Position numbers and translations under genes: made by a program. From assembly GCA_965113315.1 (NCBI GenBank), contig OZ220363.1: a stretch of DNA of 64,000 nt; one strand, written 5' to 3'. Of this stretch, positions 1-47,600 are shown in pieces. The notes under the pieces are model-generated. The model searched no databases and had not been told where the DNA came from. It saw only the letters and a list, made by a program, of their open reading frames with translations. How positions within the stretch are numbered: position 1 is the first letter of the stretch; each line of letters begins with the position of its first letter. Source of the DNA: Podarcis vaucheri. Taxonomy: Eukaryota.

Positions 1-146
1 AGGACCAGATGCTATCAATGGTGTACACTCTGGGTACACCGCTACTTAACCCCATCATATACAGCCTGAGGAACAGAGAGATGAAAGTAGCCCTGAGGAA
101 AGTCATCAGACACCGAATCTTCCAAAGGGAATCTGAATGCCACTAA
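1..146 (+). CDS. Olfactory receptor, 3' end only (TM7 and C-tail), family-10/OR10W1-like
   Basis: The frame starting at 3 reads [47 protein letters not shown], containing the OR TM7 motif P(M/L)LNPxIYSLRN. Stop TAA is at 144-146; the 5' part lies outside the window. Confidence 0.93.
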
Positions 147-6290: not shown

Positions 6291-6514
6291 ATGAATACCA
6301 TAGGCTTCCTTGCACTCGCTTTTCCTGTTCTGCTCTGGGAAGCTTCTTCAGTAAAAAACAAATGGCTTAAAGGCCACCCTCAGATGTCTGCTGCCATGCC
6401 AGATTTCTCAGTTCAAGGAGATGTGGTAATTGGGGTAGTCTCCCCTGTCCACGCAAGTGTGCACTCCACAATAACACATCTCAAAAGTCTGCCACAGGCA
6501 GCTAGCTGCAAGGG
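6291..6514 (+). CDS. V2R exon 1 (signal peptide, GDVVIG)
   Basis: MNTIGFLALAFPVLLWEASS...QGDVVIGVVSPVH...SCKG; donor gtaagt at 6515. Confidence 0.85.
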
Positions 6515-9051
6515 GTAAGTCTCACTTCCAATACATTTCTTAAGATGGAGGAAATTAACGGATAGAAAGAAGAATTAATGGAAGAAAAACCTGTGGCTGT
6601 CACAAAAAGTAAAGGAAACACTGTCTGCTTCTACTGCCAGAAAGACTAAGGCTGCAATCCAATGCACGCTTGTCTGAGAGCAGTTCCCATTGAATTCAGT
6701 GGGTCTTACTTCTGAGTAATCAGGTTATGCTGTAAGATTACATTTATGTCTCAGTCTAAGAATGGGATGGGGAACCTCTTGTTGGACTACAACTCCCATC
6801 ATCCCTGTCCCTGACGATTGGCTATGCTGACTGGGGGTGATGGTATTTGGAGTCTAACAACATATGAAGGGCCAGAGAGCGCTTTAGTGCTCTTAGGTGA
6901 CCTTTGTAGGAGCTATCCCATTTTATCTTCAAAGCAGCTCTGTGAAGGTTTAGGCTGAGGGGCTCATCCAGACTGCCTTTTGGGTTGCATTGCCATTTGT
7001 GGTAGTGTGGGTTTTTTGGAGAAAGCACGGGGACGAAACAAAGAAAAACAAGGCTCAGTCATGGAGCTTTAAAGTTTGGACCTGTGCCTAGAAGTGCAGC
7101 ACAAAAAAGATGTCTGGATGAGCCTTGTGACTGGCCCAAGTCACAGAGGAACAGGGAGTAAAATGAAGGCCACTTTGTCAAAGTCCAACACTCTGTCCAA
7201 TGCACTCGACACTCTCCACACACGTCATTATGCTGGCTATCATTAACCTTGGAGCTCAAATCAAGGTTCTAGAAAATGACTTTTTGTGCTCCCTTTCTTC
7301 AGCTTGGACGGGAGTCTCAGAGCAGGAGCATTATAACTGCACACTGCACACATGAGTAAGCTCACCCATGCCTTCTCTCAAACATTTTCTCATTTGAAAG
7401 GGAGAAAGTCACAAGTTTACTAGGATCAAATCCATGCTAGACCTATAGAAGGAGGTTGCATTGAAGAATAATTCTTGTGCTTAAATGACCATTTCTTCTG
7501 TGGGGGGCGGGGCGGATCTTCTGATAAACATCTGCTCAAACAAATACCAACTGTGCTCAAAACTTCCTTTTCAGATTCCGCATTCGGTTTTTCCAGCACA
7601 CTCTGGCCATTCTCTTTGCCCTTTCAGAAGCAAATAAGGACCCCGGCTTAGTACAGAATATCACCCTGGGCCTCCAGCTTTATGACTCATGCATCTCACC
7701 AGCCAAAGCACTGAAAGGTGCCCTTTCTTTTTTATCAGGCCCACAAGAACTGGTGCCCAACTTCAGCTGCAGCTCTCGGCCTTTGCTTCTCGGTATCATT
7801 GGCGCAATGACTTCCCCAGAGTCAGAGCCCATAGCACAAGTGCTTTCCCTCTACAGAGTTCCTCAGGTAAGCAGTGTACCTAGGAAGATCAATTATATAT
7901 CCTGCTAGATGGTCTCAGTTTACAAAAAGTAATCAAATGGGTTTGACAGGGTAATTGTAAGAATTGCTGTAGACATATATACATGCACACACATTTGTGT
8001 GCTTTTCATTCTTTCTCTACAGCTGGAATGTGTTAATTTAGCAGAACGTTTTGTCTGTGTGATGGATAGAGACCTTGGACTTTCTTATCAAAATCTTCTT
8101 CCAACTTAAAAATGAAATCTCCATCTCTCATTTGAAGAACTGGGAAAGTGTCCTTGCTAACTAATTTCATCATACCCTGGGTGCTAAATATAAGGAACAT
8201 TTCATCAGTACTGTATATGGCACAGGTGGAGTCTGCTGAGCTGCTCAGGGTGCTCCAACTCTTAATTCCAAGCTCTCTGAACATCTCCACGCTCTGGTCA
8301 GCACAGAAAGAGAGAGAAGAGATACTGGCAACTCACATAGTTGAACAGAGAATGTAAATAAAGCAACTCAGTGCTGCAGGAATTACCAGATGAATGGAAA
8401 CAGAAGACAGATTTCAGCTGGCCAGCCTTGGCTTCTGTATTATTGTGCTTCCTGGTAATGTAGGGATGCAGATGACAGATTTTTAAGAAGTTTGTTAGGT
8501 GTACCATGCTGCAATCTATATACCTGCCTGCCTGTAATGTCAGTCAACATAATATTGTTACGTGATGCTGTCCTAGTATAGCTGTTGACATGTTTCATCC
8601 TAAATGTGTGCAGCGCAGATCTATTAATATTTACTCAGAAGGCTCACAGAATTCAAGGGGAGCTCCTTCCTCAGTAGTTGTGCTTAGGAGTGCAACATAA
8701 CAGTTTACCGTAATCCTTTGACTTATTTTGCGAGCATCTAACATGCCCAACCTATTTTTCCTCTATCTTCATCAAGTTCTACTCCATCTTTGCAATCACT
8801 ATACAATATTTATTCTTCCTTTTACATCTCTCCTACTCATCTTCCTTCAATTTTCTTTTTCACCCTCTTCATTCTACTGGAACTTAATAATCTTGTACAA
8901 ACCCCATCTTCCCTCAGGCTTTTCCCATACCCATCTATTTTAACATGTTATTAATGTCATTACATTCCCTTTGACTTTACATTACATGCAAACACAGATA
9001 ACAAAGCACAGGCAGGAGGGGAAAAAGTAGTGGGCAGAAAAATGATTAAGA

Positions 9052-9131
<80 letters not shown>

Positions 9132-12100
9132 TCCTGCTCCAAAATAATTTTCCTAAAGAACAAAAAGAAGAGTGAGAAGGCTTGGTGGATTCCACTGCAT
9201 ATCTCTCTCTGTGTAATGTGTAGTTCAGCTCTGATATTTGCACTGCTTTCATCTCAACACTTTAAAAAAACTGCTGGGAAGTTTCCTTTTTCAAAAGTGC
9301 TACTTTTTCTTCATCATACTTTCTTTTGACTTGGTGCCTTATATTCTGTTTTCCCTTTCTAACTCTGTAGCCTCTACTTTTCTCAGCCATCGTATCTCCT
9401 TTGAGCAAGGACAGCGCCCATTTGCTCCATGAGCCATATTTACCTACTGTAGTCACTTAGCAACACAGGAATCTGCCTTATATTGTGTCAGACCATTGGT
9501 CCATATAGCTCAGTATTGTCAACAATGACTGGAGTTGCCTGGAATTAAAAGTGGGACCTTCTGCAGGCAAAGCAGCTGCTCTACCGCTGAGCTGCATGGA
9601 AACATTATTCATTTTATTATTGAGAATGATGGTGATGTTCAACTACTGTGTATCTCCTTTCCTTGTGCATTCTTTTAAAACGCTGTTATGAAAAGGATGC
9701 TTTATTAAAAATCCATGACAGAATGGCAAGTTAGGACAGATAAGTCTGAAGAGAGCAGGCAATAAGGAATAAGGTACAAAATACTGAAAGAGAATCTGTG
9801 ATTCCCTCTTTTATCCCTCAGATCAGCCATGGTTCTCAAGATCCCAAGTTTTCTGACCACTTCCGTTTCCCATCATTCCTTCGTACCGTGCCTTCCAGCG
9901 GCCACCAGCCCTCTATGCTCTGCCAGCTTCTGCAGCACTTCAACTGGACATGGGTGGGTGTGGTGAGTTTTGGCAGCGATGCTGCTCAGATGGAGACCGT
10001 TTTGAAGAAGGAGTTGGGCCAGACGGGGGGCTGCCTTGCCCTGTCCAAAACAATCCATGACCCCTATTCCCGGCTGGAGATGAGTGCAGCTGCTAGGGAC
10101 ATTGGGAACTCACTAGCAAGTGTTTTCGTGTGCCACTGCTACAACATCCACTTTCAGCTGCTTGCCGGGGCTCTACAAGCACAAAACATTACCAGTAAGA
10201 CGTGGATCTTGACAACGAGCCTTGCTGTGATCCCAGAGATGTTCACCAAGGAGGCGTTACAGCTCCTGAATGGGAGCCTGGATCTGAGGATTCATTCGGA
10301 TAAAATCTCAGGTTTCGATCATTTCCTGACCACGCTTAGCCCTGCTGCTTATCCCAACAGCCATTTGGTGAAAGTGCTTTGGCAAAATCTGTTTGACTGT
10401 GTTTGGCCAGGTTTAGAAAAAAACGATGGAAAAAACACCCCCCGACTCTGCACTGGGGTAGAGCAGGTGGGTACCAGCCACTTGCTCCTCTTCGATCTAG
10501 AGAACTGGGCTGCCACATATCAGGCCTATCTTGCAGCCAGGGCCTTCATCACAGCCTACCACAACATGATCTCCTGCATATGTGACAGAGGGCCCTTCAC
10601 CCAGGGAAGGTGTGCCACAACGAAGCATTTCCAGCCATGGCAAGTGAGTCAATTGTTCCTCTCCTTGTCTAGACTCAGTTTCTGCTTGTGTAGAGTTAAG
10701 CAGAACTGGGTTCTAGGTTGGAAGGACTTTAGAAGTCTTAAATGTCCTAAAAGTTACAAGAAAACATTGCTAGCAAGGAGCAATATTCTTGGCAGAGTCA
10801 GGGCCAGAGAGAGGACATGGGGCAAGAACTCGAACCAAGCATGCCTCCCCCACCCACCCTGCCCACTTAGTGGAAATGTGCAAACACACGCACACTGGGG
10901 TCAGCTACAATACAACCGGAGAGAAAACCAGTCCATCTATCCATTCCACTTGTCTCAGTTAGATATCTTCCTATCCAGTCTGCACCACTTAATACAGCTT
11001 AGGACTGGGATCTTCAATATGGATGAGTGCAACATATGCCCAGATCTTAAGGTGGCTTCGGGTTGGGCCATTTGACTTTTCCATGTTGTACCAATAAATC
11101 TCATATTGAGGGATCAGGAAGCAGAAGGGAGAAAGAACTCCAAGGCCGCTGCTTCTTATTGAGTGACTTGGGTAAACCAAGCAACTTCCAGACGTGTAGA
11201 AGTTACATGTGCTTCAATCTGTTTTTAGCCCACTGTTGATTTTAATTAGTTTTGAATGTTTTTAAAATACCTGTTTTTGACTGTCTTTTATTAATAATTT
11301 TATTTCCCTGCTTTTATTGTGTAAACTGCTTTGATGCTCTATTACAATCAAGTAGCGTATAACTGTTGTTAAATAAATAAATGGTAAGCCGTACCTGATT
11401 GATACTAGAGTTGTGTGAAAATGGCCTTCTGAAATCCTCCAGCTAGAGCTCTCCATATCCCCTGCCCGCCAACTGACCTGGGTTGACTTGGGGAACATCC
11501 AATCAGGATTCAGCCTCAAATCAGTTAGGGTCTTCAGAAACCTATATGGTAGGAAGCAGGGAGGAGGAAGGAGATCCTGGGTCTCCTTCTCCTCCTCCAG
11601 ACCACACTGCAGAAAACAGGGGACTTTAGCTCTAGCTCTTCTGGGTGCTATTTTCCAATGTAACCTGCAGGGAATGTGATGGCAATGCAGACCCCTTCAG
11701 CCAGCAGGATTGCCCTCTTGGTGGGTGCCTCCTGCAATACCATTGTTCCAAAGTGGGTGGCAATATCTTCAGAGGTGTCCAAACTGGTGAAGTTTGAGAT
11801 GTTTTGGTCCAACGTATTGACTCAGCACCTGAATTCCAAATGTAAACCAAAACAGGTGCCTGCATCTTGGGAATTATCATGTCAAATTTGGCAACAATAT
11901 CTCAAGAGGTGTTAGGATGAATAGAAAACAGATGGGCAGAAAGACAAACCAATTTCTAAAATATATAGTAGGAAAAAAAAACATGTAATGCTTTCCCTGT
12001 AGGAAAACACATTTCTGTTGGTTCCCTGATGCCTGTTCCTGTCAAGACTATTTTATGTTTCGTGTTTTACTATGTTTTTATATGTGCTGTGAGCCGCCCA

Positions 12101-12176
12101 GAGTGGCTGGGGAAAAGTATAAATAATAAAATTATTATTATTCTCATCATCATAATCTGAATTAATCAGGTTATAT

Positions 12177-12224
<48 letters not shown>

Positions 12225-15200
12225 AGTTTCATATAGAAACAGCCACTTCTTCTGATATTTTAGGTCCATCATTACCTAAAGAATATCAACTTTACCACTT
12301 CATCAGATGAGATTTTTTTCAAGAATGGCGAGATTCCGGCTACATTTGATATTATGAACTTGCAGATTTTGCCCAATGGCTCTTACAGGGCTGTAAAAGT
12401 TGGAGTTCTTCGTTCCAGACCTCAGCTGAGGAAAGAGCTTCTGATTCATGACAATGCCATTAGGTGGGCAGGGGGCCTTGCTCAGGTAAGTTCCTTACTT
12501 GTATTGAGCCTATCCCTATCTCCCTTCTCTAATGAGGTAACATCAGGCCTAGAAATTATGGAGCAAACAAAAGCATTTCTGCTTACTAGGCAGACTGTTC
12601 TCCCTTCTCCACCCTGCATGTTCTGTTTGAGGGGGGTTCTCTTTGTGGGATGGGTTTTAATGGGCAGGAAAGGGTATGTTAATTGCAACTTATCCCTCCA
12701 GGCTCCTACACAGGTTTTAAAATCCCACCCTTGCCAACAAAAATTTAAAGCTTAGAAATTAGGCTGGAAAACCTTGTTTTGAGCAAAACCAGCTTCAAAG
12801 CAAAGGCATCCCCCTTCTTACCCCACTTAATAAATAATAAGGCAGCAACTTGGGAAATAAGTTTAAAAATATGATTTACTTACTTTATAATCATGCATTG
12901 GTTGACACTTGATAAGGTTTGATTTATTACTATGTTGACTGACTGAGTGATTGAATCTAATGGCAAAGTGGCTGAGAAGGCTGGAGGCAGGCTGCTTTAT
13001 ATTCCCAGGGAGCAGACCCAAGTGAAGCCTACAGGCTGAGTTGGGTCTGCCTCCTGTGAATGGCCTTTCCCTGTAGCCTGCCTACGATAGGCCAATTTGT
13101 GGGCATGCTTGAATCCATAGCTCTAGCCAGTGAGGAAGGCTTGCTGACCTCCCCTGCCAGCCAGGAACTGACCCATCATTTGATCTCTTCGTGTGAGACA
13201 GTGTCAGTCCCGCACCTGGGGAAGGTAAGCAGTCTTCCATTTCCTTTTTCCTCCTAGGTGCCTCGTTCAATCTGTTCAGAAAGCTGCCTGCCTGGATATA
13301 GGAAGCTGCCTTTGCAGGGGAAGCCACACTGCTGCTACAGCTGTCTGCAGTGCCCCCATGGTCAGTTTGCCAGTGGAACAGGTAAACACCACTTTAACAG
13401 ACACTGGGTTTTCAGGGGCTGATGATTACCACTGGGCGGGCAGCCTCCCCAGCCACATCCCCACCCCAGTATCCAAGACAGTAACAAGATGCATCCATTA
13501 GAGGTCACACTCTGGACAGCAGTGGTAAAAAGGACCACTTCTTATATATGGGACAATGTCCTGTATCAGGCCCAGGCCCACGAGAAGGCTTCTGATGCAG
13601 GGGCAGGAACATGTAGCCTTCTAGATATTCTGGGATGCCAACCTAACAAACCCAGGCAGTATAGCCAATTATCAGGAATTGTGGAAGTTGTAATCCAGCA
13701 AAATCTAGAGGATCACATGTTCCCTACCCCTTCTTTCAGACTGGCACAGAAGGCATCATTTTGCTCATGGTACTGTTTTTTATATCAAAGTCCCACAATG
13801 ACAGGACCAGCAAAAATGGCACATGGTGCAAGTTTCCTTTTGAGGGGGGCTGCTTTCCACTGCTTTCCACTGCATTTCCACTAAAGTAATGGGACTTACT
13901 GCTTATAACAGATGTGGGGAACACTCCTGAATTGTTTCCAGCACCAGTTAACCAGGGAGGCATGCAAGGGGATCGCAGAGATTGTGATTGTGTATGAGTG
14001 TGGGAAAGAATGGGTGCACAGGCTGTATACACATGAAAGTGTGTGTGCAGGCTGGGGAGGGGGAAGAGGCACACAAGCCCCACCCACAGCAAGATACAGT
14101 CCTGCCCACACTGGCATGCAACCCTGACCCACTGCCACATGCAGCCAAAAATGTACCTTATAGGAAATGAAGGCTCCCTCACCAAGTCCTTCTGAGTGGC
14201 AGAGGCGGCAAATAACTAAATTACCAATGCGATCACTGTAGCCACTGCATGACTCTATCCCCAATATTATTGTGTGCGATTGCCATGCCCTCAAACAAGG
14301 GTGGGAGAACATGTGGCCCTCCAGATGTTACTGGGCAACAGCTCCCATTCACCTCAGTATGACCAGTGATCAGGGATGCTGTGGGTTGTCGCCAATCAGC
14401 ATCTGGAGGGCCACAGACACTGGCGGAGGAAGAGGAGTGTGGGGGGAGCACACCGCCCCTGGCAATGTGATCCTGGTGGGGTGCCATCGCAGCTGCCCCC
14501 CCACCCGTGGGGGACGCCACACCCCCACAGGCTGCGTGCCACGTCCCCGGGACACATACCAGCCCCGCCCCTGCCTGCTCTCCACCCCCCCGTGCTGGAG
14601 CATGAAGCTCCGCCACCGGCCACAGATTCTCCGTCCCTGCCTTTAAAAGAAAACCCCTGTTCTGCATGCTCCTCCCTTCTAGACAGTGCCACCTGTTGGG
14701 AGTGCCTTCCAGGACAATGGCCCAATGAGCAGCAAGACAGATGCATCCCAACCATCATTGACTTCTTGTCCTACACGGAAGTTTTGGGTGTGGTGCTGGC
14801 AACCTGCAGTTCCCTTTTCTTCTTGCTCTCGCTGTCAGTCTTGGGTATCTTCATACAGCATCACAACACCCCAGTTGTCAAGGCCAACAACCGCAAGCTC
14901 AGCTACCTCCTCTTGACCTGCCTGGCTCTCTGCTTCCTCTGCCCTCTGATGTACCTTGGGCACCCATCGCAGCTCACTTGTTCCTTCCGCCAGGCTGCCT
15001 TTGGCCTGGTCTTTGCCATTTGCCTCTCTGCAACCCTGGCCAAGACGGTGACTGTGGTGATGGCCTTTGGAGCTTCTAAGCCTGGCAGCTGCCTCCAGAA
15101 GTGGGTGGGTTACAAGCTCCCTGGCGCCATCACTCTGGGCTGCTCCCTTGTCCAAGCTGCTGTATGTATCTGCTGGATAATGGTTTGCCCCCCGTTCCCA

Positions 15201-15614
15201 TCACAGAACCCACTACATGGAGGGCCTCTTGTGACCCTGGAGTGTGACAAAGGCTCAGTTGAGTTTTTCTACACCATGCTGGGGTACCTGGGCCTTCTAG
15301 CCACCATCAGCTTAGGGGTGGCCTTCCCAGCCCGCCGGCTGCCAACAGCTTTCAACGAGGCCCAGCACATTGCCATCAGCATGCTGGTCTTCACTTTCGT
15401 CTGGGTCTCCTTTGTGCCCTCCTATCTCAGTGCCACAGGGAAGTACACAGTGGCCGTGGAGATCTTCGCCATCCTGGCTTCTGGAGCTGGTTTGTTGGCT
15501 TGCCTCTTCTTCCCCAAATGCTACATCATTATCTTGCACCCTGAGAAGAATAACAGGGACAACCTTATGGGCAGACAACTTCCACGCAAAGGAGACTTTG
15601 CTTATGCTGCATAA
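6291..15614 (+). CDS. Vomeronasal type-2 receptor-like class C GPCR (V2R), intact, 6 exons, 871 aa
   Basis: Exons 6291-6514, 7575-7866, 9822-10643, 12264-12485, 13258-13381 and 14683-15614 total 2616 nt. All introns are GT-AG with phases 2,0,0,0,1 and there is no internal stop. The protein has a signal peptide, Venus flytrap domain, 9-Cys domain and 7TM with VKANN, LAKT, FNEA and PKCYII motifs. Confidence 0.93.
7575..7866 (+). CDS. V2R exon 2
   Basis: 292 nt, missed by the ORF track: FRIRFFQHTLAILFALSEANKDPGLVQNITLGLQLYDSC...VPNFSC...IIGAMTSPES...YRVPQ, with ttttcag acceptor and gtaag donor. Confidence 0.92.
9056..9129. repeat. (CT)n(CA)n compound microsatellite
   Basis: Seen directly in the sequence. 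Confidence 0.95.
9822..10643 (+). CDS. V2R exon 3 (Venus flytrap)
   Basis: ISHGSQDPKFSDHFRFPSFLRTVP...HFNWTWVG...FQPWQ; donor gtgagt. Confidence 0.93.
12183..12220. repeat. (CA)n microsatellite
   Basis: Seen directly, about 40 nt upstream of V2R exon 4. Confidence 0.95.
12264..12485 (+). CDS. V2R exon 4
   Basis: VHHYLKNINFTT...FDIMNLQ...AIRWAGGLAQ; tttag acceptor and gtaag donor. Confidence 0.9.
13258..13381 (+). CDS. V2R exon 5 (cysteine-rich domain)
   Basis: 124 nt, VPRSICSESCLPGYRK...PHCCYSCLQCPHGQFASGT; cctag acceptor and gtaaac donor. Confidence 0.93.
14296..14639. mobile_element. Palindromic hAT-like MITE (host copy, interrupted by a second MITE)
   Basis: tgtggccctccagatg...catctggagggccacaga|ttctcc matches the family seen at 50765-50904. 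Confidence 0.65.
14418..14618. mobile_element. GC-rich hAT-type MITE nested in V2R intron 5
   Basis: Imperfect TIRs cactggcggag / ctccgccaccg with a perfect 8-bp TSD gccacaga (14410-14417, 14619-14626). Confidence 0.8.
14683..15614 (+). CDS. V2R exon 6 (end of CRD and 7TM)
   Basis: Acceptor cttctag at 14682; DSATCWEC...DRC...VKANN...FNEAQ...PKCYIIILHPEKN...FAYAA*. Confidence 0.93.
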
Positions 15615-15883
15615 GCTGCAAATGGACAGCATGTATATTTAGGAAAAGCGTTTCTGTCCCACTTTTCTGTTTAGCTACACCAGGCCTGGGGAGCCAGAAA
15701 GAGCCCCTTGTAAAGAGCACAGCACCTAGAAACACCGATGGTCAGCTGATCTCTGCTTCAGAAGCCCCTGTTGGCCTAGCCCAGCCATCTTTTTACCTGT
15801 CCACACTTGATGTCATGTATGACATCAGCTGTAGAGGCAAGTGAGCGTGTCTTGGCAAACAAATAGTGGGGGGAGGACCTAGT

Positions 15884-15990
15884 GTTTAGGGAAACTTTTA
15901 ATGTTTGACAAACTATTGTATTTTAATATTTTGTTGGAAGCTGCCCAGAGTGGCTGGGGAAACCCAGCCAGATGGGCACGGTATAAATAA

Positions 15991-16041
<51 letters not shown>

Positions 16042-16043
16042 AT
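15884..16043 (+). mobile_element. L2 LINE 3' end with (TTG)n tail
   Basis: tttagggaaa...gctgcccagagtggctggggaaacccagccagatggg...gtataaataaa followed by (TTG)n. Confidence 0.75.
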
Positions 16044-16123
16044 TGGGCCACATGGGAGGAAGGGCCTTGGTTCTCAGCCAGGTGGTTTCTCACTGGTGAT
16101 CTACACCCAAGGCAGCTTACAAT

Positions 16124-16702
16124 CAGGGCAGGATTTAGGTTTGATGAGGCCCTAAGCTACTGAAGGTAATGGAGCCCTTTATATGTCCAGCTGTCCTTTG
16201 TCAACAACAAATTGCCGCTGTTTTTTGTGTTGAATATATGCTATATGGCAATTTATCGACCTAATAGGTATCTAAAGCCATTTGCACATAACAAAATATG
16301 TATTTTATCAAAGTAATTGTTGAACTGAAATACAATTAAGAAGTATATTAATAGTGAAATACAATTAAGAAGGAACATATCAATAGTGAAATAATTATTA
16401 AGCTCTAACATAAAATGATTTTTTATTCATAACAAACTGAATAATGCAAACACATTGGCATTTGGCAATAACAAAAGTTCCTTTAAAAATGAGCCAGTGA
16501 TATTTTAGGGAGCAGGCTAGCAGGTGGGGGCCATTACTTATATCATAGGAGCCTACACAACACAAAACACTGTTGCTGTATGTAGGTTTTATTCCATTTG
16601 TTTTTTCTTATATTTTGCAAATGTACATCCAGGTGTTTTTTTCTTTAATTTTTTTGGGGGACCCAAGAGAATGGCTTTAGCTTATACGTAAATCCGGCAC
16701 TG
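16124..16702. mobile_element. Non-autonomous hAT-type DNA transposon
   Basis: TIRs cagggcaggattta / taaatccggcactg, a degenerate 8-bp TSD cttacaat / cttgcaac, and an AT-rich interior. Confidence 0.7.
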
Positions 16703-18036: not shown

Positions 18037-18987
18037 TCACGTTGCAAGCTGCTTTGTCTTGGAAATAACCCTGTATAAGGCCCCCTTCACCTCTGCATTC
18101 CGTAGGCTATAGATGAGGGGGTTGAGCACAGGGGTGACTATTGCATAAAATACTGACACCACCTTGTTGAGGTTGATCGATGAGGCCACCTTAGTACGTA
18201 CATACATGAAGAAGAGTGTCCCATAGAAGATGGACACCACTGTCAGGTGGGCAGTACAGGTGGAAAAGGCATGGCGACGCCCTCCGATGGAATGAATCTT
18301 CAGCACTGTGGAGATAATGCGGACATACGATACTACAATGACAACAGAGGAAACCAGGAGCACCATCAGCGAGACCAGGAAGTCAACCGTCTCCTTCAGG
18401 GAGACATCAGTGCATGAGAGGACAATGAGTGGAGAAGCATCACAGAAGAAGTGGTCTATAACATTGGGGCCGCAGAAAGTCAACTGGGACATGAAGTAGA
18501 TGGGCAGTGCTGGGGTGAGGAACCCCACTAGCCACGAGCCAGCAGCCAGAAGCATGCAAGCATCTCGGCCTACCATCTCCTGGTAACGCAGAGGCACACA
18601 AATAGCCACATAGCGGTCATAAGCCATGGCTGCCAGCAAGAAGCACTCAGTGCTGCCCAAGAAGGTGAAGAGGTAAAGTTGGGCCAAGCAGGCAGAATAG
18701 GAGATAATTCGACCACCAGGAGATCCAAAGCTGGCCAGCATCTTGGGCACAGTGAGGGAGGTGTACCACATGTCCAGGCATGAAAGGTGGAGGAGGAAGA
18801 AATACATGGGGGTGTGCAAGCGCCTTTCTGTTGCCACCAGCAGAACCAGGATGGCATTTTCGGCCAGGGTCAGCAAATACATGACCAGGAAGAAGGCAAA
18901 AAGAGGCAGGCGCCCCTCGTTGATGCCTGTGAAGCCCACCAAGACAAACTCTTCCACAAGGGTCCAGTTCTCATGTTGAGGCTGCAT
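18037..18987 (-). CDS. OR6Q1: Olfactory receptor 6Q1 orthologue, 316 aa, intact
   Basis: All OR motifs are present (LHTPMYFFL, MAYDRYVAIC, HFFCD, AFSTC, PVLNPLIYSLRN). It shares distinctive strings with human OR6Q1 as recalled (MQP..NWT, SQLTFCGPNVIDH, KETVDFLVSL, YGTLFFMYV.TKV.SSIN.NKVVSVFY) and lies near CTNND1 as in human 11q12. Confidence 0.85.
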   Translation of the reverse strand: MQPQHENWTLVEEFVLVGFTGINEGRLPLFAFFLVMYLLTLAENAILVLLVATERRLHTPMYFFLLHLSCLDMWYTSLTVPKMLASFGSPGGRIISYSACLAQLYLFTFLGSTECFLLAAMAYDRYVAICVPLRYQEMVGRDACMLLAAGSWLVGFLTPALPIYFMSQLTFCGPNVIDHFFCDASPLIVLSCTDVSLKETVDFLVSLMVLLVSSVVIVVSYVRIISTVLKIHSIGGRRHAFSTCTAHLTVVSIFYGTLFFMYVRTKVASSINLNKVVSVFYAIVTPVLNPLIYSLRNAEVKGALYRVISKTKQLAT

Positions 18988-24124: not shown

Positions 24125-25096
24125 TCATGACAATACAATAAGGGCAGTTCTCTGTGTGTTCTTCAGACACGTGTTCTTTACTCGGCTGAGGACCTTTCCC
24201 AAGGCTTTTTTCACATCTTTGTTCCTGAGGGTATAGATGATGGGATTCAGCACTGGGGTGATGACAGTATAGAACACAGATACCACTTTTTCCAGTTCAG
24301 AAGTCTGACCGGAATGTGGACAGAGGTACATGAAGATGACAGTGCTGTAGAAGATGGTGACCACCGTGAGATGGCTGGCACATGTGGAAAAGGTCTTGTG
24401 CCTTCCAGAAGCAGATGGGAGATCCAAGATGGTAGAAACAATCAGGGCATAAGAAGTCAAAGTCAGGAGAAAGGACACAAGCACAATCACTGCAGAGACA
24501 AGAAAGACCATTGTGTCAGCCATGAAGGTGTCTCCAGTCGATAAGTTAATTAAGGGGCTCGTGTCACAGAAGAAGTGGTTGATCTGGTTGCTGCCATTGA
24601 AGGGGAGCTGGGAGATGAAGGCTATGGGCAAGAAGGGGGTCAGGAAGCCTCCCAGCCAGCAACTGCAGGCTAGGCAAGCACAGACACAGCTGTTCATGAG
24701 CACAGGATACTGCAGTGGCTGGCATATGGCTAAATACCTGTCATAGGCCATAATAGCCAAGAGGAAAAATTCTGTGGTACCAAGCGAGAAGAAGAAATAC
24801 ATCTGGGTGATGCAAGCCTGCAAGGAGATGGCTTGGGGGCCTTTGAGAAAGTCCCCCAGCAGCCGGGGAACTGTGACTGAGGTGTAGCACATCTCTAGGA
24901 ATGAGAAATTGCTCAGGAAGAAGTACATGGGGACATGTAGAGCCACATCCATATTTGAGAGGAGAATGATCAAGGCATTGCCAAGGAGAATGAAGAGGTA
25001 GACTACCAAGAAACTGAAGAACAACAGGATCTGGAACTCCTGGAATCCAGAGAAGCCCAGTAGGATGAATTCAGGGGCCGAGGTGTTGTTCAGCAT
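24125..25096 (-). CDS. Olfactory receptor, class II family 6/11-like, 323 aa
   Basis: The likely start is MLNNTSAPEFILLGF (N-glycosylation site). Motifs LHVPMYFFL, MAYDRYLAIC, HFFCD, KTFSTCASHL and PVLNPIIYTLRN are present and the frame is intact. Confidence 0.92.
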   Translation of the reverse strand: MLNNTSAPEFILLGFSGFQEFQILLFFSFLVVYLFILLGNALIILLSNMDVALHVPMYFFLSNFSFLEMCYTSVTVPRLLGDFLKGPQAISLQACITQMYFFFSLGTTEFFLLAIMAYDRYLAICQPLQYPVLMNSCVCACLACSCWLGGFLTPFLPIAFISQLPFNGSNQINHFFCDTSPLINLSTGDTFMADTMVFLVSAVIVLVSFLLTLTSYALIVSTILDLPSASGRHKTFSTCASHLTVVTIFYSTVIFMYLCPHSGQTSELEKVVSVFYTVITPVLNPIIYTLRNKDVKKALGKVLSRVKNTCLKNTQRTALIVLS

Positions 25097-25654
25097 AGTC
25101 TTGGTGTTGCATGTACAGCCAGCATCAAAAACAGGAGGAGGGGGAGAGAAACAGACAAAGATGTGTTGGTGATAAAGAGTTACCAAATGGAAAATCCCAA
25201 CATTTGCTGTTCTAATGACCAGATCAAGGACACCTGAGTCCACTTTCATTATCTTTGGTTTGAACAAAGCCATAATTCTGTCTCATGATGATACAAGTAA
25301 GTTTCAAGTTTCATTCATAGACATTTGCATATAATGAAGTCAACCCGATTTGGCTTTTTGGTCATTTAAGATGTGTAACGGACATTGTATATTTTTTCCA
25401 AAATCACAATTCACCATATGATTGACATTTTTCCAAGGATGGGTTAAGCCTGGTTGTAGTGACTCACAAAGTGGACAAGTGTTGAATCATTCACAAAACC
25501 TATTCAACAGCATTTTGAAACCACCAGGATATAGTTATGTGAATCACCTTCTGAGATTGGTTCAACAATTCAAAATCTTACTTTGGTGGAACCCAAGTTC
25601 CACCAATAGGCACGACTCAATCAAGCCTCTATCTCCAACCTCTTAGTTGGAGTA

Positions 25655-35660: not shown

Positions 35661-38600
35661 CTGTGGAGAGAGACAAGAAAGCCCAGGTTAACACAGCCAC
35701 AAGTCCAATGGCAACAAGGGGAAGATTTATACAGAGCAAGCGGGCATGGAATCAAGCAATCCAAACTCCAAGTGTCCTCAGTGAGGCGGGTCTCTGAAAA
35801 GTGGATTGTTAAGCAACGTCCCAGATTTTGCCCCTGCGAATGCTTGATTTATTGATTTGAGGAACAGGCCAGATTTTCCTCTCCCCTGCTTTTGGATACA
35901 GAAGCAGAAGAGCACCAAAGCCACGGGACATACCATAGGAGGATAAAGCAACGCGTCACTCTCCGCAAAGGATTCCTGCCCTTCCTCCTGCTGTAGACAC
36001 ACACATTGTTAGTAAGGACGGGTTGTTATGTAGGAAGGGGAGAAAAGGGAGCAAGAAGTCTAACTGAGAAGTCACTGGGGAAAATGAAAGAGGCTGAGTT
36101 GAAGGTGTGAATAGTCAACAAAGACATGGGTTAGGTGTTTAGTTAACAAAACTGCAGCCCCCCAAAACACACTGGTATGGGGGTGGGGTGGGGGGGGAGA
36201 AATGGTTTGTACCAACACTATTCCCAATTCAGTTCTAGAAATCCTTGGCTTTCTAAGCTTTGAGGGTTTTGTTTGTTTTTAAACCTATCGAGGGATATAT
36301 AAACTACAAAAATAAGCTTGGACAGCAAGCTTCTCTTGTTCTCTCCCCATCTTTTTTGCTACCCGTGCCCAGAAACACCTATGCCCCAGAGGTCTCCCTC
36401 AATGGGCATATCCCAGTCTTTACCATCAGTGGGGCTCCCTTCATAGATTCCATTTCTTCTCCAGGTCGTTCCAATGTCCTATTATGGTCCCGCTCGTTCA
36501 GTGTAGAGTAATTGTCTGAAATGAAGAGGAAGGCTTGATATGAGGAAACGTCTCATGGGCCCAAGGTAAGCAAGGACACACTCTTCCCTTCCTCTGCGTC
36601 CGGAGTCAACTTACATCTCCCCAGCCAGCCAGGGAACAAGCATCATCTTCTCCTTCCTTGCTGATTTACAGATGAGAAGACGTGTGCACACAGAGCACTG
36701 ACCATCATTCCCTCCGCATTCTTCTCTCCACTCGGTATTCTCCCTACTAGCTAGCTCAATGGAACTGGGGGGGAAAGAGGACTCACCACAATGCTGCCTA
36801 GCCCTGGGACACCCTAGAGTGCAATAAGCCCGCTAATTTAAGGGAGAGAGACATACGCCAGCCTTAGTTTCTGGAAAAGCTGTGTCAACCTGAAGATAAC
36901 AAGAATGTATTAGCTGTAAGCATCTAGAGGGGAAAGATGAATCCTGTTTCATTTTGGAAAGGCTAGAAGGGATCTATCATTGGCTGAATGCCTACATAAA
37001 AGCAAGGCTATCCCCCTAATGCAGCTACCTACTGTGTTTTATTAGCAGGATACAAGCACACTGAAGCCAGAGAAACTATACTCAACTTACCTTACCAGTA
37101 ACAGCACTAGTTGTGCTTTATTCTTAGGAAAGCTAGCCTTCCAGCTACTAAGTGGCAGGAGGATTAGCTACCTCTGTGGGGTTGATGGACAGCACTGGCA
37201 AGAACCTAGCACAGCATCTGCACAGCTGGACTGGCTATGTATTGGTGTGCTCACATGTACAGGACTGAGTTAGATGACAAAGCACCTGTGGCCCACTAGG
37301 TTTTGGAGACAGGTTTAGAACACTGCACAGCTATACACAGAAGGGTGCTGGAGTTTATCCAGCAGNNNNNNNNNNNNNNNNNNNNNNNNNNNNNNNNNNN
37401 NNNNNNNNNNNNNNNNNNNNNNNNNNNNNNNNNNNNNNNNNNNNNNNNNNNNNNNNNNNNNNNNNNNNNNNNNNNNNNNNNNNNNNNNNNNNNNNNNNNC
37501 ATTTGGATCTCCTCTCGAGAAGATTTCTTGTCTGCACAGAATATAAAAATCAGAGGAGTTAGCAACAAAGTCCTTGCTCCTTGTTTTGACTAATGTGGGA
37601 CTTGTCTAATCTATAGCGGCATTAAGAGTAAGCCATTCAATTAAGGTCACAGCAGAAGTTCCCCACCAGCAGAAAGCCTACTGGCAATTTTGGTCATTCC
37701 CTTTCACTAGGCTAGAAATACTGATTAGGAGCAAATAATAATATTCTTAAAATCCTTCTACAGATTGAAACTTTCGACAGTTTTGGCTGATGACATTTTG
37801 TGTTGCTGCAACACTGAGCCACCCTTTCAAAACAAATGCATTCACTCTTTTTTTATCTTGCTCTTTGACTAATGGGCTCTTGCTGCAGCTCAGCGATAAT
37901 GAAGAGCGTCTTAAACAAAATAAATATCATGTTAAAAGTTACAACTAATCTTGCACTTACCTCCTTTTTGGTTCTTATCAATGAGGGGCAAGGTGCTGTC
38001 ATCAAAGGAGTTGCCACCCTGGCTTCGAGTACTGTTACTCCGGTTCACCTGAAAAGAAGGAACCAGCCGGTATATTTAAGCTGCCGTTACTACTGATGTT
38101 CCTGGCTACCTAAGTATTTCCTCAGCACTTCAAAGCATAGGCTGCCAGCCATGGGGGCTCTAGGTGCACCCCAGCACAACACAAACACGCCCATTAAAGA
38201 GGACAGGGCTGCAGAAACAAGCTTTCGCAGGTGTTAAATGCAGCCTGCCCTGAGAACCTAGGCCTTCAACTGAAAGGCCGGATTCACCCTTTGCTCTTTC
38301 AACACAGTGTGGCTTAGAGGTGAGAACACTGGACGAGGGAGGAATCCATTTTGAACTGATTTGTACATAATTTTGGCAGTTCTGACCTCATCAAGAGCTT
38401 TGATCTTACACTGGACCACCCTTGTGCATCAAGCGCCTGAACCCAGTCCAATTAATTATATGCAAAATTATACAAAAGAAACAACATTGCACTATGTCAA
38501 GTGTTCGATTGGGGGAAGCATTTCTGCTTGCCAGTCGAAATGACACCCCCTCTCCTCCCCCGCATGCTGTTCTGGGGGCTCCCCTGACCTCTCCAGTGTC

Positions 38601-41600
38601 AATTAGGAGGGTGTGTGGGGACCCTCCATTGCAAAAGACTTTCTGCTGATGGGGGGCTCATTTGTTGAAACCCACCGTCACACATATGAAAGTCAAAACA
38701 CATGTTGTGCTATATTTCTGCGGCATAATTTTATATGTTAATATAACTGTATTTGTATAGTTATATGCAATGCTGTATTTTTTCTGTTTAGGTGCTGGTT
38801 ACTTTAGGAATCCTAGAGTGTATGTCTGTACCCATATTAAGACTGTGCATAACATGCTAGAAGTGTTGGGGTTTTTTTGTGGAACTGGAGAGAACTCTCT
38901 TCTTGGCGAGTGAGGTGGGGATTAGAAAAAAATCCATGTGGATAAGCTCAACATTGGGGTTTTCAGAAAATTCCACCCCTGGCTTAACTCCCAAATACCT
39001 GGAAGTCAGACTTCTTCCATCCTTCCTTCTCCAGTGGCTTCCGCAATTCCTTATACCCCCAGATTGTCTGCAGTACAAGAGCAGCTGCTCTGATTTCTCT
39101 CTCTGAGCGGTTCCTAGGAGGAGAGAACAGAAGATTATTACAAAAGAACAAACAGCCCAGCCCATAAGCTTCCTAAAAGAAGGGTGGGGGGTTTGTAGAA
39201 ATCTGTGCAAGCACCCTCTACTTAACCCCCTTGGGAGCTGTACCCACCCGGATTTATTGATCAGCACCAGTTTCTCAATGCCTTGCGTCTCCCGCAGTTT
39301 CTTGGCTGCTTCCAAGTTATCCAGAATGACCTCATTTATGGTATTTAACACAGAGACCACAGTATCTTCAGAGAGGTTCTTAGCCGGCGTTTGCTGTCCC
39401 CCTGGCAAATTCTTCACTAAACTGGGGATTGCATGCTTGCCTAGGAAAAGGATAAGATCAGAGTTGGTTAGGGGGAAAGGAACAATATAAACAGAAGTGA
39501 TCAGAAGACAGAAGCAGAATTGCCCAACAGACTCTTTTAGACCTCGAAGGCTCTTCTACCATGAAACTGATATAAGGCACAAGCTGAATATAGCGGAGAG
39601 GGAGGATTCTGTTCTCAGCTGATCAAGGGAATGCAACTGTCAGAACTTCATTCATTCACCCAGCAGAGCAAGTTGCCAGCCAAGCCTTATTTAGCTAGAT
39701 GACAGGAAAAGCCATAACAAAATGCTAGTGCTCTTGTTGGGACTACAACTCCCATCAACCCTTACTTTGGAGCCATGTTGTTTGGGGTAGACGGAAACTG
39801 AAATTTATATAGATAGATATATACTGGAGAAGCCTAAAAACCCTCAACACACTTGAACATTGCATCACTTTATGCCAGTTTCCCTAAATCTGGTGCCCTC
39901 TAGAGGCTGTTGGATGGACTCCAACTCCCATCACCCCTATACTTGGGCCATGCTGACTGGGGCTGATGGAGGGCAAAGGCTTTTCTCGCCAACCTCCACC
40001 TTCCAATATTCTACTATGATGCTTGATCAATAATGATCACAAACCCACAAGCAATTATCCTGCCACCTATGGGCACAGGGACCCTGACCACCAGTGTGTT
40101 CCCTGGCACTGAGCATCTTTCAAGAAGCAGTTTGAGTTGTGTTTGGTTTGGCCAATTCTTGGCATAACTCAGCTAGCATGTGTTTCGGAAAGGACTGGGC
40201 CCCCCCCCCTCCCGAAGTGTTACCTACACCCAACTGCTGAGACAGGACAAGAAATCCACCCAAGTCCCTTCCCTTCCTGCTCTCACCTATCAGCTCTTTG
40301 TTACGGGAATCCACTGCCAGGTTGCGCAGGGCTCCAGACGCAGCTTTCACCACACGCTCACTGTCGTAAGTCAGCAGGTCCGCAATGGCAGAGAGGCCTT
40401 TCTCCTGGCGCAACGCAGAGCGGATGTACCGACCGTACTGCAAAGAGAGAAAGCACAAGACACTTGGCTTTAGTGAAAGAGCTACATGAGAAGCTATTAG
40501 ATCTACCCAAGAAGTGGGCTCCATACCCAGGAATATTTTTTCCCCCTGAACAAAATGCCCCTGGCCTTACCTCTGCATTCCCACAACATTAGTACAGTGA
40601 GAGCTCAGTTTCCTTAGGAATTCCCATAGCAAAAGTCCACTGGCAATCCAATGCGGAGACCAGCTGTTTGTTTTTATAGTTAACACCCAGCTTGCCAAAT
40701 GCCTTCTTAACCACAATGTTGACTTCACTATTCCACTCCGGAAATTCCCCATCAGGCTGAGACTACAGCCTAGACATGAAAAGCTATCGAAGGGATCCGT
40801 GAATGGACGGTCCTTGCAGCCATGAAAGGAGCACAGAGAACATTGCCAGGGACTTCCATGGCTGCTGCCTTCTAAACTGGACCTGCTTGTCCAGTTCAAC
40901 ATGCGCTGGGATGCTAGGAGGGACCGGATGGGACTCCTACTCACTTATGCACAATGAGGCCTCTCTGCTTTGCCCGCAGCCTTAACTACAAACCTTTGCC
41001 CAAGATAGGTCTTTTTTAATTAAAGAAGAAGGCAGATCCCAGTTTGCAGTCCCTGCCTCTCTCGGGTGGCCCACTCACCGTCCAACGCCCAGCACACAAA
41101 TTCTGGATGGCTCCTGCTGAAGCTTCTAAGATAGCTTGAGTTTTGCTCTCCTTCAACAGGGAAATATATATGCGGACAATTTCTGGCTGGAAGAGGAGCT
41201 CATAACCTAGCAAAACGGGAGAGAAGGAAGTTTCATGTCAAGCCTGCCAAGCTCTCTTTTAGGTAGTGCCCCCCACCAGGAACAAAGGAAGCTGCCTTAT
41301 CATGCACTTGGGTTGATTTAGTTCAGCGCTCTGAACACTGATCATGACTGCAGGACCTTCTGCAGGAGGAGATGGTTACCACTGAGCTATAACTCTTCCC
41401 CAAAGAGCTCCTCACAAGATGGGTGGTGGCTGGGGGTGGGGATAGCAGTGCCCCCTTGGTAAAAAAAACAAAACCCTTCCCATGGCAGACCTGCCTGGTG
41501 CCAACACTGCCTAGCACTGAAATGATGGCAAATATGTATTGTTTTCCCCTAGACACTCTGATGGATCAATGCTATGCAGTCACCTTTCAGGTAAGGCAAC

Positions 41601-44600: not shown

Positions 44601-47600
44601 GTGTTGTCTGAATCCAAGCTGTGCCTGCAAACAGGCTTCAAAGGGGCTTCCTGTAATCGCCAGCCAGCTGCTTACAACAATCCACTGGAGCTTTGTCAAA
44701 GTCGGCTTGCTGGGTGATGGTGCGGGATTAATGATCTGGCCCACCAGCTGATCCAGCTCCCCATCCTGATGTAAAGGGCATCAGCTGGGGGGAGGTGGGG
44801 AGAGACAAGCTGCCTTAGTGCATCTGTGAAACAACCCAGAGACCCAAGTGGAATACCACTTTGTGAAGTGGAAGTTCCCTACAAAAGGGCAGGCGGGGCA
44901 AACATTATGCCCAACATTACAAGGATGGATCTGCGGTGGGGAAGAGAAAATGGATACATCTACGTGCTTTATTGGGAATCTCCTCTTTACAAAATGGGAG
45001 AAATGTTCCTGGTATGGGTGAAAATTAAAGACTCTCCGACTCAGGCACCTAGATGCCGCTCTCAGAAAAGGGGGAAATCAGAAGACAGGCAAACACAGCA
45101 CATTGCATTTGGTGCAGAAGGATCTCTCCCTACCGCCAAGAAGGGCAAGTGGCAACTAGAATAGGGCTACCTCCTCCCACACTCCCATTACCTTGCTGTC
45201 TAAATCTTTCTGGCCAATCTCTGCTTGGACAATGTGGATGAGGGCATCCACTAGCCCATCACACTCCCGCAACTTTCGGCGGGCTTCACTCCTCTCCGAG
45301 CTGACATTTCTACAAAGAGAGAAAAAGAAACGTTAGAAAGATGGAGACACTATCAGGTAGTGACTGTTAAAGCCTGTCTGCTTTCCTGTGCTTAAATTTA
45401 GGTCACATTTTCACTCTCAAGTCTGTGCTGGGTTTGTGGGTGGAGATTTCAAGCCCCTGGCTTGAAATCTGGGAACCTTCAGACATCATGGCAGAAGCCT
45501 TTTCCAGCCTTTTCCTCATACAACCTGCTACACCGTCCTAGTCAGGCTAACTGTAAACCTCATGGGCTATCTATTTCAGCTCCAACACTGCCTGTCACCC
45601 AATTTTCTGCTGCTGCAAAACACACACACACACACACACACACACCAGCCAGGAAGACCAGCAACTTCATCTTGTTCCTTCTGTGTGGCCCATCTCTTAG
45701 CCCAGCCAGAATTAGGGGACAGACACCAGAGTACATTGCTCCAATGACCTGCAGTCAGGAATTCAACATTAAGGCAAAGCAGGAGTTCTATGGTCTTCTC
45801 AAGTTATAGCATCTCCAGTTTATTAGAAGGCACCAATCTCAGCTCCAAGAGTCCAGTCTAAATGGTTCATCTCACTTCTACCAGAGCCTCCTCCCAATAA
45901 GCTGGCAAACATTAGGCTTGCCTTACGTCTGCTAAAAACAGGGCCTTTTGTGTGGCAGCATCCAACTTTTGGAATGTGCTCGCCGTGAACATCAGCCAGG
46001 CACCTACAGCAGGGTCACTCAGGTGTCTGCTTAAAGTTGATATGCAGATCAACGGCCTCCAGCACACGGAGCACGCAGGTGTGCCTGGAGGTGCAGGGCA
46101 GCCCCAGCTTACCTAAGGCAGCCAATGGTGTTGGTGAGCACTGACTCCCACTCTATGTGGCGGGGCTTCGAGTCCTCGCTGGGCTCCCTCTCCCATCCAG
46201 AGTGTGGGATGATGACCTCGTCCGTGAGGGCATGTAAGGCATTGTCCACAATGGCCATTTTTATCGAGTCGTGAGAGGACAGGTTCCAGAGTGTTCCTGC
46301 GCCAAGAGAAAGCGTTTGCCTGGTCAAGGAGTGCCTGGAAGAGCTCCGATGCCTCCGCCTCCGCCTTCCCTCCCAAAGCCCAGAAATTACCTGTGATGAC
46401 CTCGGTGAGGTCCATGTCGCGCGCCTTCCTTAGCAGCCGCACCAGAGCAGGGACACCGTCGCAGTTCTTGATGGCGATCTTGTTGTCCTGGTCCCGGCCG
46501 TAGGAGATGTTCTTCAGGGCCCCGCACGCCCCGTAGTGCACCTCCTTCTTCGGGTGGTCCAGCAGCTCCACCAGCACCGGGATGCCCTTCATCTTGCGCA
46601 CCTCCGTCTTCACCTTGTCGTTGCGGTAGCACAGGTGCTGCAGGTAGGCCGCGGCGTTGGACTTCACCGCATCCAGGCGGAAGCCCAGCATGGCGATCAC
46701 CTCGGGGAGCTCAGGCTGGCGCCAGTTGGGCGGGGGCGGGCCCCCTTTCTGCAGGCTATCCATGCTGGCTAGGCTGCCCCTCTCGTGCTGGGCCAGGGGG
46801 GCCCAGTAGTACTGGTCTCTAGCCAAATCATCCACCAACATGTCCTCGTAACTCCTGCAAAGGAGGGAGGAAGAGAAGCAAGTTACTTTCAGGATCCGTC
46901 AGTCATCCAAAGCAGCTGAACTGCCACAAACAGGAACCAGGCTGGTCTGCCTATCTACAGAAGAGATCTGCGGGACAAGGATTAAGAAGGGGTTCCACCA
47001 TCACCAACCACCTGTTTAAATTTCTTGGTAGGATAAGGTAACACAGCCACCCAGTCGTGGCATATCATCCCCACTGCTGCCATGCTAAAAGCTGAAAGTG
47101 TGGCTCACAAAGCTGTGCCCAAACAGCCAATCCTCTAGCAAAGCCTTTCTCAACCAGTGGATCCCCAGATGTTGTTGAACTACAACTCCCATCACCCCTA
47201 GCTAGCAAGGCCAGAGCTCAGGGATGATGGGAGTTGTAGTCCAACAACATCTGGAGACCCACAGGTTGAGAACCGCTGCCAGGAACAGGTGGTAGCAGAA
47301 CTTCCTAGTATAACCAAGTAAGAAGGCCCCCTTTCCCTGCATCACCTTGACTTTCCTTTCTTGCTCAAGTTTTCAGATATGTAGGCGACCACAAGCTCTC
47401 AGGGTCAAGCACCCGAGTGCCTCTAATTTGTCTTGAAATTAGAAGCAGATAATAACAATGACAGCAGCTTACACCAGTGGCTTAAGCTGGGCCCAGGAAG
47501 AAATGGTTTTAGTTCTTAAAGAGGGGTGAGCAAGTTCCCAGGTAGTTTTGTCACTGGGGATTTTTCCAGCACCTTTCGCCTCCTTTAAGATATAGACACT

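Follow-up and report, generated by a model that had tools for sequence, protein, structure and literature searches.

The genome of the lizard Podarcis vaucheri carries, among its olfactory receptor (OR) genes, an intact gene for a class C G protein-coupled receptor (GPCR) of the V2R (vomeronasal type-2 receptor) kind; it occupies positions 6291-15614 (plus strand) of a 64,000-nucleotide (nt) stretch of contig OZ220363.1, the whole of which is called the window below. The receptor groups with five other squamate proteins, and with marsupial and placental proteins as their sister group, in a clade that lies within the tetrapod-type V2Rs and apart from the main V2R expansions of amniotes. Overall, the best explanation, which we hold to be probable with considerable reserve, is that this intact gene represents, in single copy, an old amniote lineage of tetrapod-type V2Rs, with sparse, vomeronasal-type expression and an accidental position among ORs. 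Exon structure, domains, clade membership and neighboring genes are direct observations; the expression and function proposed for the receptor are drawn from its relatives.

The coding sequence is split among six exons of 224, 292, 822, 222, 124 and 932 nt, which total 2616 nt (871 codons and a stop) and are joined in consistent intron phases; every intron starts with GT and ends with AG, with a pyrimidine tract before each acceptor. Exon 1 (6291..6514) extends from the ATG at 6291 to a donor GT at 6515, ends in phase 2 and encodes a signal-peptide-like N-terminus; it has no Pfam family and shows weak homology, with a Cavia protein as the top match (P0169; 43% over 35 amino acids, aa), and its assignment is a prediction that draws on the reading frame, the splice sites and this match. 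Exon 2 (7575..7866), bordered by AG and GT, opens the Venus-flytrap domain (ANF_receptor, 9e-13), includes the motifs YDSC and MTSPESEP, and is 62% identical over 97 aa to a Sminthopsis protein (P0168). The long exon 3 (9822..10643) encodes the main part of the same domain (ANF_receptor, 1.4e-21) and a C-terminal Cys...GPF...Cys loop. Exon 4 (12264..12485) has splice borders and no Pfam family; it is 97% identical to its Lacerta agilis (P0152) and 65% to its Pogona (P0154) counterpart. Exon 5 (13258..13381) encodes six of the nine Cys residues of the cysteine-rich domain (NCD3G, 1e-14), and exon 6 (14683..15614) the last three, followed by the whole seven-transmembrane (7TM) domain (7tm_3, 3.6e-75, full profile 1-251), a short tail and the stop; the two pieces combined hold nine. 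Microsatellites of the (CA)n/(GA)n type lie in introns 2 and 3, at about 8990-9100 and 12171-12232.

Single exon pieces, each taken separately, served for the searches, the domain scans and the trees. Scanned in this way, four of the six pieces have Pfam families (exons 1 and 4 have none), and the set that they form, ANF_receptor, NCD3G and 7tm_3, is that of V2R/OlfC receptors. The exon plan is theirs as well: six coding exons, a long exon 3 and the 7TM domain in the last exon are given as typical of V2Rs in a rattlesnake study (PMC12400810). Among solved structures in the PDB, the calcium-sensing receptor (CaSR) is the closest (1.2e-71 for exon 6, 8e-27 for exon 3); mGluRs and T1Rs match much more weakly. 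A preliminary description of this DNA had claimed a complete, 871-aa, six-exon class C GPCR, and exon coordinates, GT-AG introns and domains all agree with it.

Where do the relatives of this receptor lie? A HMMER search with exon 6 against 1.84 billion representative proteins finds 3134 at E<=0.001; among the best 150, fused multi-receptor models aside, the first are from Podarcis raffonei (P0004, 97%) and Zootoca (P0005, 94%), the third is Monodelphis Vmn2r616 (61%), and the remainder stand at about 45-57%. When the P. raffonei protein is used in a word-indexed search (8000 candidates scored, 963 at E<=1e-20), the best 120 include proteins of L. agilis (99%), Eublepharis (65% over 87%) and Pogona (59%), and proteins of marsupials, Tupaia, Cavia, Otolemur, Loxodonta, Erethizon, Trichechus and Hipposideros rank above the V2Rs of amphibians, lungfish and coelacanth. 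The relation is reciprocal: with the Cavia protein as the query, 38 of 8000 candidates reach E<=1e-20, namely 22 mammal rows, then two lacertids (50% and 47%), then six amphibian and eight fish rows at 33-46%; mouse, rat and human have no member among these 38. BLAST identities fall in the same steps: for exon 6, 97% (P. raffonei), 97% (L. agilis) and 94% (Zootoca) with lacertids, 78 and 76% with gecko and Pogona, 58-62% with the mammal group and 55-57% with the best outsider; for exon 3, 96% (P. raffonei) and 90.5% with lacertids, 62 and 61% with gecko and Pogona, 42-51% with the mammal group and 37.5% with the best outsider. Marsupial species contribute up to two rows each to the clade.

The trees, for which every protein was trimmed to its alignment with a single exon piece, lead to the same grouping. 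A FastTree analysis of exon 6 with 367 rows, that is, all stored proteins covering the piece, recovers a clade of 28 with support 100: the window gene, its five squamate partners (P. raffonei, L. agilis, Zootoca, Eublepharis and Pogona) and 22 mammals. Slower trees of exon 6 use 85 rows, the window gene plus 84 of 391 proteins picked by hand (27 clade members, 11 main-expansion, 23 amphibian, 4 lungfish, 5 coelacanth, 2 bichir and 12 teleost proteins); the main-expansion rows come from Podarcis muralis, Zootoca, Elgaria, Tiliqua, Gekko, Anolis, two snakes, Tupaia and Dipodomys. Under LG+F+G4 in IQ-TREE, with 1000 ultrafast bootstraps (UFBoot), splits read from the unrooted tree and support given as Shimodaira-Hasegawa-like approximate likelihood ratio (SH-aLRT)/UFBoot, the lacertids (4 rows) have 97.4/99, the squamates (6 rows) 99.9/100, the mammals (22 rows) 99.4/100 and the whole squamate and mammal clade (28 rows) 100/100. 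A quick LG+C20 analysis of the same rows gives SH-aLRT values of 100 for squamates, 99 for mammals and 99 for both, with a stem of 0.4. In the tree of exon 3 (66 rows; 16 labelled proteins that lack an exon 3 BLAST match and three partial rows were left out), the SH-aLRT values are 99 for squamates, 95 for mammals and 100 for both together, a Rhinatrema trio stands next to the clade (94), and the main expansion is represented by just three rows, all long-branched. In both exon trees, the sister group of the squamates is made up of 21-22 marsupial and placental "CaSR-like" proteins.

The same exon 6 tree fixes the position of the clade among V2Rs. The 11 main-expansion rows form a group of their own (93.6/99), which joins seven caecilian and frog rows at 95.3/99 and leaves the clade of the window gene outside; the maximum-likelihood check proposed in the preliminary description thus places the gene outside the recent squamate expansion, and indeed outside the main amniote V2R expansion as a whole (mammalian ABDE plus the reptile-specific clade), and the FastTree and LG+C20 analyses agree. 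Further down, tetrapods and two lungfish (61 rows) are united at 99.2/94, with coelacanth, bichir, and other lungfish and amphibian rows outside; the exact amphibian sister of the clade is poorly supported (57/85 and 39/61). Because the clade is nested within tetrapod-type V2Rs, the lineage is old but not basal. The description of the gene as a relic of a deeply divergent lineage is therefore half right: the lineage is old and distinct from the main expansions, yet it lies inside the tetrapod-type V2Rs when teleost OlfC proteins serve as the outgroup. In these trees, the lineage predates the split between mammals and reptiles, and it would have been separate from the main V2R expansions by then.

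The motifs, surveyed in 44 proteins and the window pieces, include some older-looking ones and some specific to the clade. Exon 3 ends in MISCICDRGPFTQGRCATTKHFQPWQ, whose Cys...GPF...Cys loop aligns with CTPGKGLFTNGSC of CaSR. The loop is present in the window gene, in both lacertid rows, in five of the eight mammal-clade rows, in most amphibian rows (the Rhinatrema trio lacks it) and in every lungfish, coelacanth and bichir row; Pogona has a shortened loop with both Cys kept. None of the eight main-expansion rows has it, in agreement with the preliminary description, and YDSC of exon 2 follows the same pattern, lost in the main expansion and amphibian-like as proposed. The description of the loop as typical of fish and amphibian V2Rs fits most amphibians and lungfish, coelacanth and bichir but not teleosts, five of six of which carry a short Cys-x4-Cys without the GPF part. 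The third motif, FNEAQ in exon 6, had also been called amphibian-like, and here the claim fails: it occurs in five of five squamate clade rows (window included) and one coelacanth row, and in none of the 12 amphibian rows. Rows without it have K, R or L at the Gln position, and the mammalian sister group has FNEAK; where class C receptors have the Lys of FNEAK, all five squamate clade rows have Gln, in the window within 14685-15611. Two signatures are confined to the clade: MTSPESEP is encoded by exon 2, and ISHGSQ.P.FS stands at the start of exon 3.

The Venus-flytrap domain also differs from CaSR where ligands bind. The five CaSR residues that hold the bound amino acid are S147, A168, S170, Y218 and E297; in the register of the CaSR alignment, these positions are occupied by S, G, Q, A and T in the window receptor, so that four of the five residues of the CaSR amino-acid/Ca site are changed. 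At the place of E297, the acidic residue of the S-E-A/G-W context, the window has T, as it also has in the column before. Teleost, bichir and one coelacanth row retain S, T/S, Y and the acidic residue. Since the residues at four of these five positions are replaced, the ligand is probably something other than a free amino acid.

How might such a receptor work? By analogy with other class C receptors, it would act as a dimer. Its Venus-flytrap domain, encoded by exons 2-4, would close upon the ligand; the movement would be relayed through the cysteine-rich domain (exons 5-6), and the 7TM domain of exon 6 would then activate a G protein in a chemosensory neuron. The best guess for the cell, taken from other tetrapod-type V2Rs, would be sparse expression in vomeronasal-type neurons. 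The place among ORs would then be an old positional accident, and this is the weakest step of the proposal.

Several observations weigh against this account. First, the gene models: the NCBI models of the P. raffonei and L. agilis orthologues start at a Met within exon 2, and that of P. raffonei (P0004) lacks exon 4. With the lacertid models truncated in this way, exons 1-2 lack confirmation outside the window; because the public models are cut at the N-terminus (those of the gecko and Pogona start within exon 3), the 871-codon model of the window is fuller than any squamate model compared. Second, the trees: they are rooted on teleost OlfC proteins and hold no V2R2, ancV2R, CaSR, GPRC6A or T1R rows, so the grouping of the gene with V2Rs is a grouping among the rows present, and the exclusion of V2R2 and ancV2R comes from genomic position and published work. 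The gecko and Pogona proteins pair together (support 76-90), contrary to the species tree, and it is the tree from which their orthology is proposed. Third, the mammals: the Erethizon, Trichechus, Hipposideros and Dugong entries (P0172, P0173, P0175, P0372) are "LOW QUALITY PROTEIN" models, so that the lineage decays in some mammals; together with the lack of mouse, rat and human matches noted above, they suggest repeated loss in placentals. Fourth, expression: none of the public runs recorded as RNA contained the V2R stretch, and when three bulk runs and one single-cell run with the same species label, tissues unstated, were mapped onto 10500-16450, no read covered the last part of exon 3 or any of exons 4, 5 and 6 (depth 0). 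Reads were confined to repeats at 12092-12290 and 15873-16450, to which many other copies contribute. Three studies supplied six runs whose kind is not given, and these contain 48-81% of the words of the V2R stretch.

The neighborhood of the gene raises the question of control. Upstream, an OR (3..110, plus strand) is cut by the window edge to a C-terminal tail of 35-36 aa, which the two other ORs of the window match in tblastn (3.5e-07 and 1.6e-07) and which scores 2.4e-04 with 7tm_4, below the Pfam cut-off. Downstream, 2.4 kb past the V2R stop and convergent with it, lies an intact OR (18037..18987, minus strand; 316-aa open reading frame (ORF), 7tm_4 2.9e-52), followed by a second (24125..25273, minus strand; 382-aa ORF, 7tm_4 6.5e-52 at residues 88-363) with an 87-aa N-terminal extension, whose real start is probably an internal Met. 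A minus-strand exon at 46113..46841 encodes armadillo repeats (1e-16) and, over 46260-46841, matches Catenin delta-1 (3l6x) at 5e-99, which establishes the linkage to CTNND1 that had been proposed; two further minus-strand ORFs without a Pfam family, 38857-39417 and 56362-56898, we presume to be CTNND1-like. With all six V2R exon pieces as queries, tblastn finds in the window only self-matches and one 11-aa chance match, so no second V2R accompanies the first there. Gene model, neighbors and the lack of a second V2R in the window together confirm the earlier observation of a lone, intact V2R among ORs near CTNND1, with one qualification: of the "two OR genes" said to flank it, the downstream one is intact, but the upstream one is represented by its tail. 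An inverted pair of interspersed repeats, 117 nt long and 79% complementary, surrounds the V2R at 710-826 and 15920-16036, and ORFs over the two copies share an AGETQPDG...LLLL translation; a run of 134 N occupies 37366-37499.

Could the OR machinery, that is, an Lhx2/Ebf promoter together with OR enhancers, select the gene, placing its expression in main olfactory rather than vomeronasal neurons? With ORs 6.2 kb upstream and 2.4 kb downstream, no V2R for a neighbor, and a subset of amphibian V2Rs expressed in the main epithelium (PMC10869828), the idea has some appeal, yet the promoter does not speak for it. Sites that differ from the O/E consensus TCCCNNGGGA at no more than one position number 18 across the window against a mean of 26.7 in shuffled sequences, fewer than expected, and there is none between 4063 and the ATG, that is, within the 2.2 kb upstream of the V2R. 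Two TAATTA-type sites near 5775 and 5805, also upstream of the ATG, are probably what chance gives in AT-rich DNA. The RNA runs, with tissues unstated and no reads on the exons, decide the matter as little as the site counts do; we regard control by the OR machinery as unlikely. A bolder version, in which the gene represents a third conserved, low-copy class of amniote V2Rs beyond V2R2, resident in the CTNND1-linked OR cluster since before the mammal-reptile split, chosen by the OR machinery and used by main olfactory neurons on land, is less credible still.

The receptor might instead be a conserved class C protein with a role outside smell, kept in single copy for that reason. The names of the squamate orthologues (P0004, P0152, P0153, P0154) hint at this: they are "calcium-sensing receptor-like" or "type-2 receptor 26-like", and P0004 is "extracellular calcium-sensing receptor-like". 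Low copy number, long retention in squamates and marsupials, CaSR as the closest solved structure and the preserved CaSR-type Cys loop fit such a role. However, the gene nests within tetrapod-type V2Rs and not beside CaSR-like outgroups, four of the five amino-acid-site residues of CaSR are changed, many mammals have lost the lineage or have degraded copies of it, in the manner of chemosensory genes, and the three bulk RNA runs and the single-cell run, tissues unstated, have no reads from it; we give this role little credence.

A third possibility is that the gene is a functionless relic whose ORF has yet to decay, a view to which the lack of transcripts in the RNA runs examined, the incomplete gene models of the orthologues and the low-quality or broken models of several mammalian relatives all lend something. 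All six exons are open and canonically spliced, however, the protein is 96-97% identical to those of other lacertids and recognizable in a gecko and an agamid, and both its 7tm_3 profile and the set of nine Cys in its cysteine-rich domain are complete, which makes a relic an improbable reading.

Could the gene be the V2R2 (family C) or the ancV2R of squamates? Its CaSR-like look, its single copy and its conservation would agree with that, as would the V2R2-like motifs noted in the preliminary description. V2R2 and ancV2R, however, stand in tandem beside PLCH1 (Zhang et al., 2022; PMC9018814), and in 10 snakes and 5 lizards the single-copy "type-1-like" V2R of squamates has GMPS/SLC33A1 on one side and KCNAB1/SSR3 on the other (PMC12400810); with ORs and CTNND1 as the neighbors in the window, the position of the gene fits neither receptor. 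According to PMC9018814, the anole has one V2R2 and no ancV2R, and ancV2R extends from sharks to frog and is given for neither anole nor mammals; the clade of the window gene includes mammals and nests above the coelacanth and bichir tetrapod-type V2Rs (99.2/94). This identity is close to refuted, and very little weight is left to it. A lungfish "vomeronasal type-2 receptor 1-like" protein (P0188), tried as a V2R2 bait, was rejected since its matches and its place in the tree are those of ordinary lungfish, amphibian and coelacanth V2Rs. Finally, V2Rs duplicate and move often, but the idea that the gene was recently copied into the OR cluster from the large squamate expansion is refuted by the trees, in which the 11 main-expansion rows stand apart from the gene, alone or with caecilian and frog V2Rs, and 8 of the 11 lack a BLAST match to exon 3 at E<=1e-3; hardly anything speaks for it.

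An old, single-copy lineage of tetrapod-type V2Rs remains the favored explanation, and it matters for two reasons. V2Rs are known for fast, lineage-specific turnover, and a V2R lineage that can be traced from lizards to marsupials and some placentals is a possible fixed landmark in their evolution. A lone V2R among ORs also offers a natural test of what directs a receptor to one kind of nasal neuron, its genomic neighborhood or the type of its promoter. What is shown at present is a phylogeny and a position in one genome. According to PMC12400810, earlier work on squamates had no confirmed V2R orthologues even between sister species, the V2R2-type gene excepted; the lineage described here would be a second traceable one beside that gene. 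The literature consulted yielded no description of the lineage or of a V2R beside CTNND1, although the supplementary trees of PMC9018814 and PMC10869828 may show the lineage; PMC11035023 has nothing on V2R families, and the Protein Atlas gave generic ANF_receptor clusters only.

How does the lineage compare with the receptors that have names? Mammalian V2Rs are divided into families A-E (Francia et al., 2014; PMC4316634), squamate V2Rs into one family C gene and a reptile-specific clade (Brykczynska et al., 2013; PMC3590772), and V2RC and V2RD subclades have been named more recently (Policarpo et al., 2024; PMC10869828). The window gene nests within the tetrapod-type V2Rs (t-V2R in PMC9018814, V2RC in PMC10869828) and shares their domains and six exons; unlike them, it is single-copy, lies outside the large lineage-specific expansions and has a mammalian sister group, and unlike the main amniote expansion, which lost both, it retains the CaSR-type Cys loop and YDSC. 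With V2R2/family C (Vmn2r1, OlfCc1), it has in common a low copy number, conservation across amniotes and a CaSR-like look, but V2R2 resides at PLCH1/GMPS and the window gene at CTNND1 and ORs, and the latter lacks the amino-acid-site residues. CaSR is the closest solved structure and its Cys loop can be aligned, yet the window receptor has a short tail, has G, Q, A and T in place of A168, S170, Y218 and E297 and is placed within the V2Rs. The sister group consists of the "extracellular calcium-sensing receptor-like" proteins of marsupials and placentals, among them Vmn2r615 and Vmn2r616 of Monodelphis: they form the 100/100 clade with the window gene and its squamate partners, share MTSPESEP and ISHGSQ.P.FS, and are reciprocal best matches, while they differ in overall sequence (58-62% identity in exon 6, 42-51% in exon 3) and in having FNEAK where squamates have FNEAQ.

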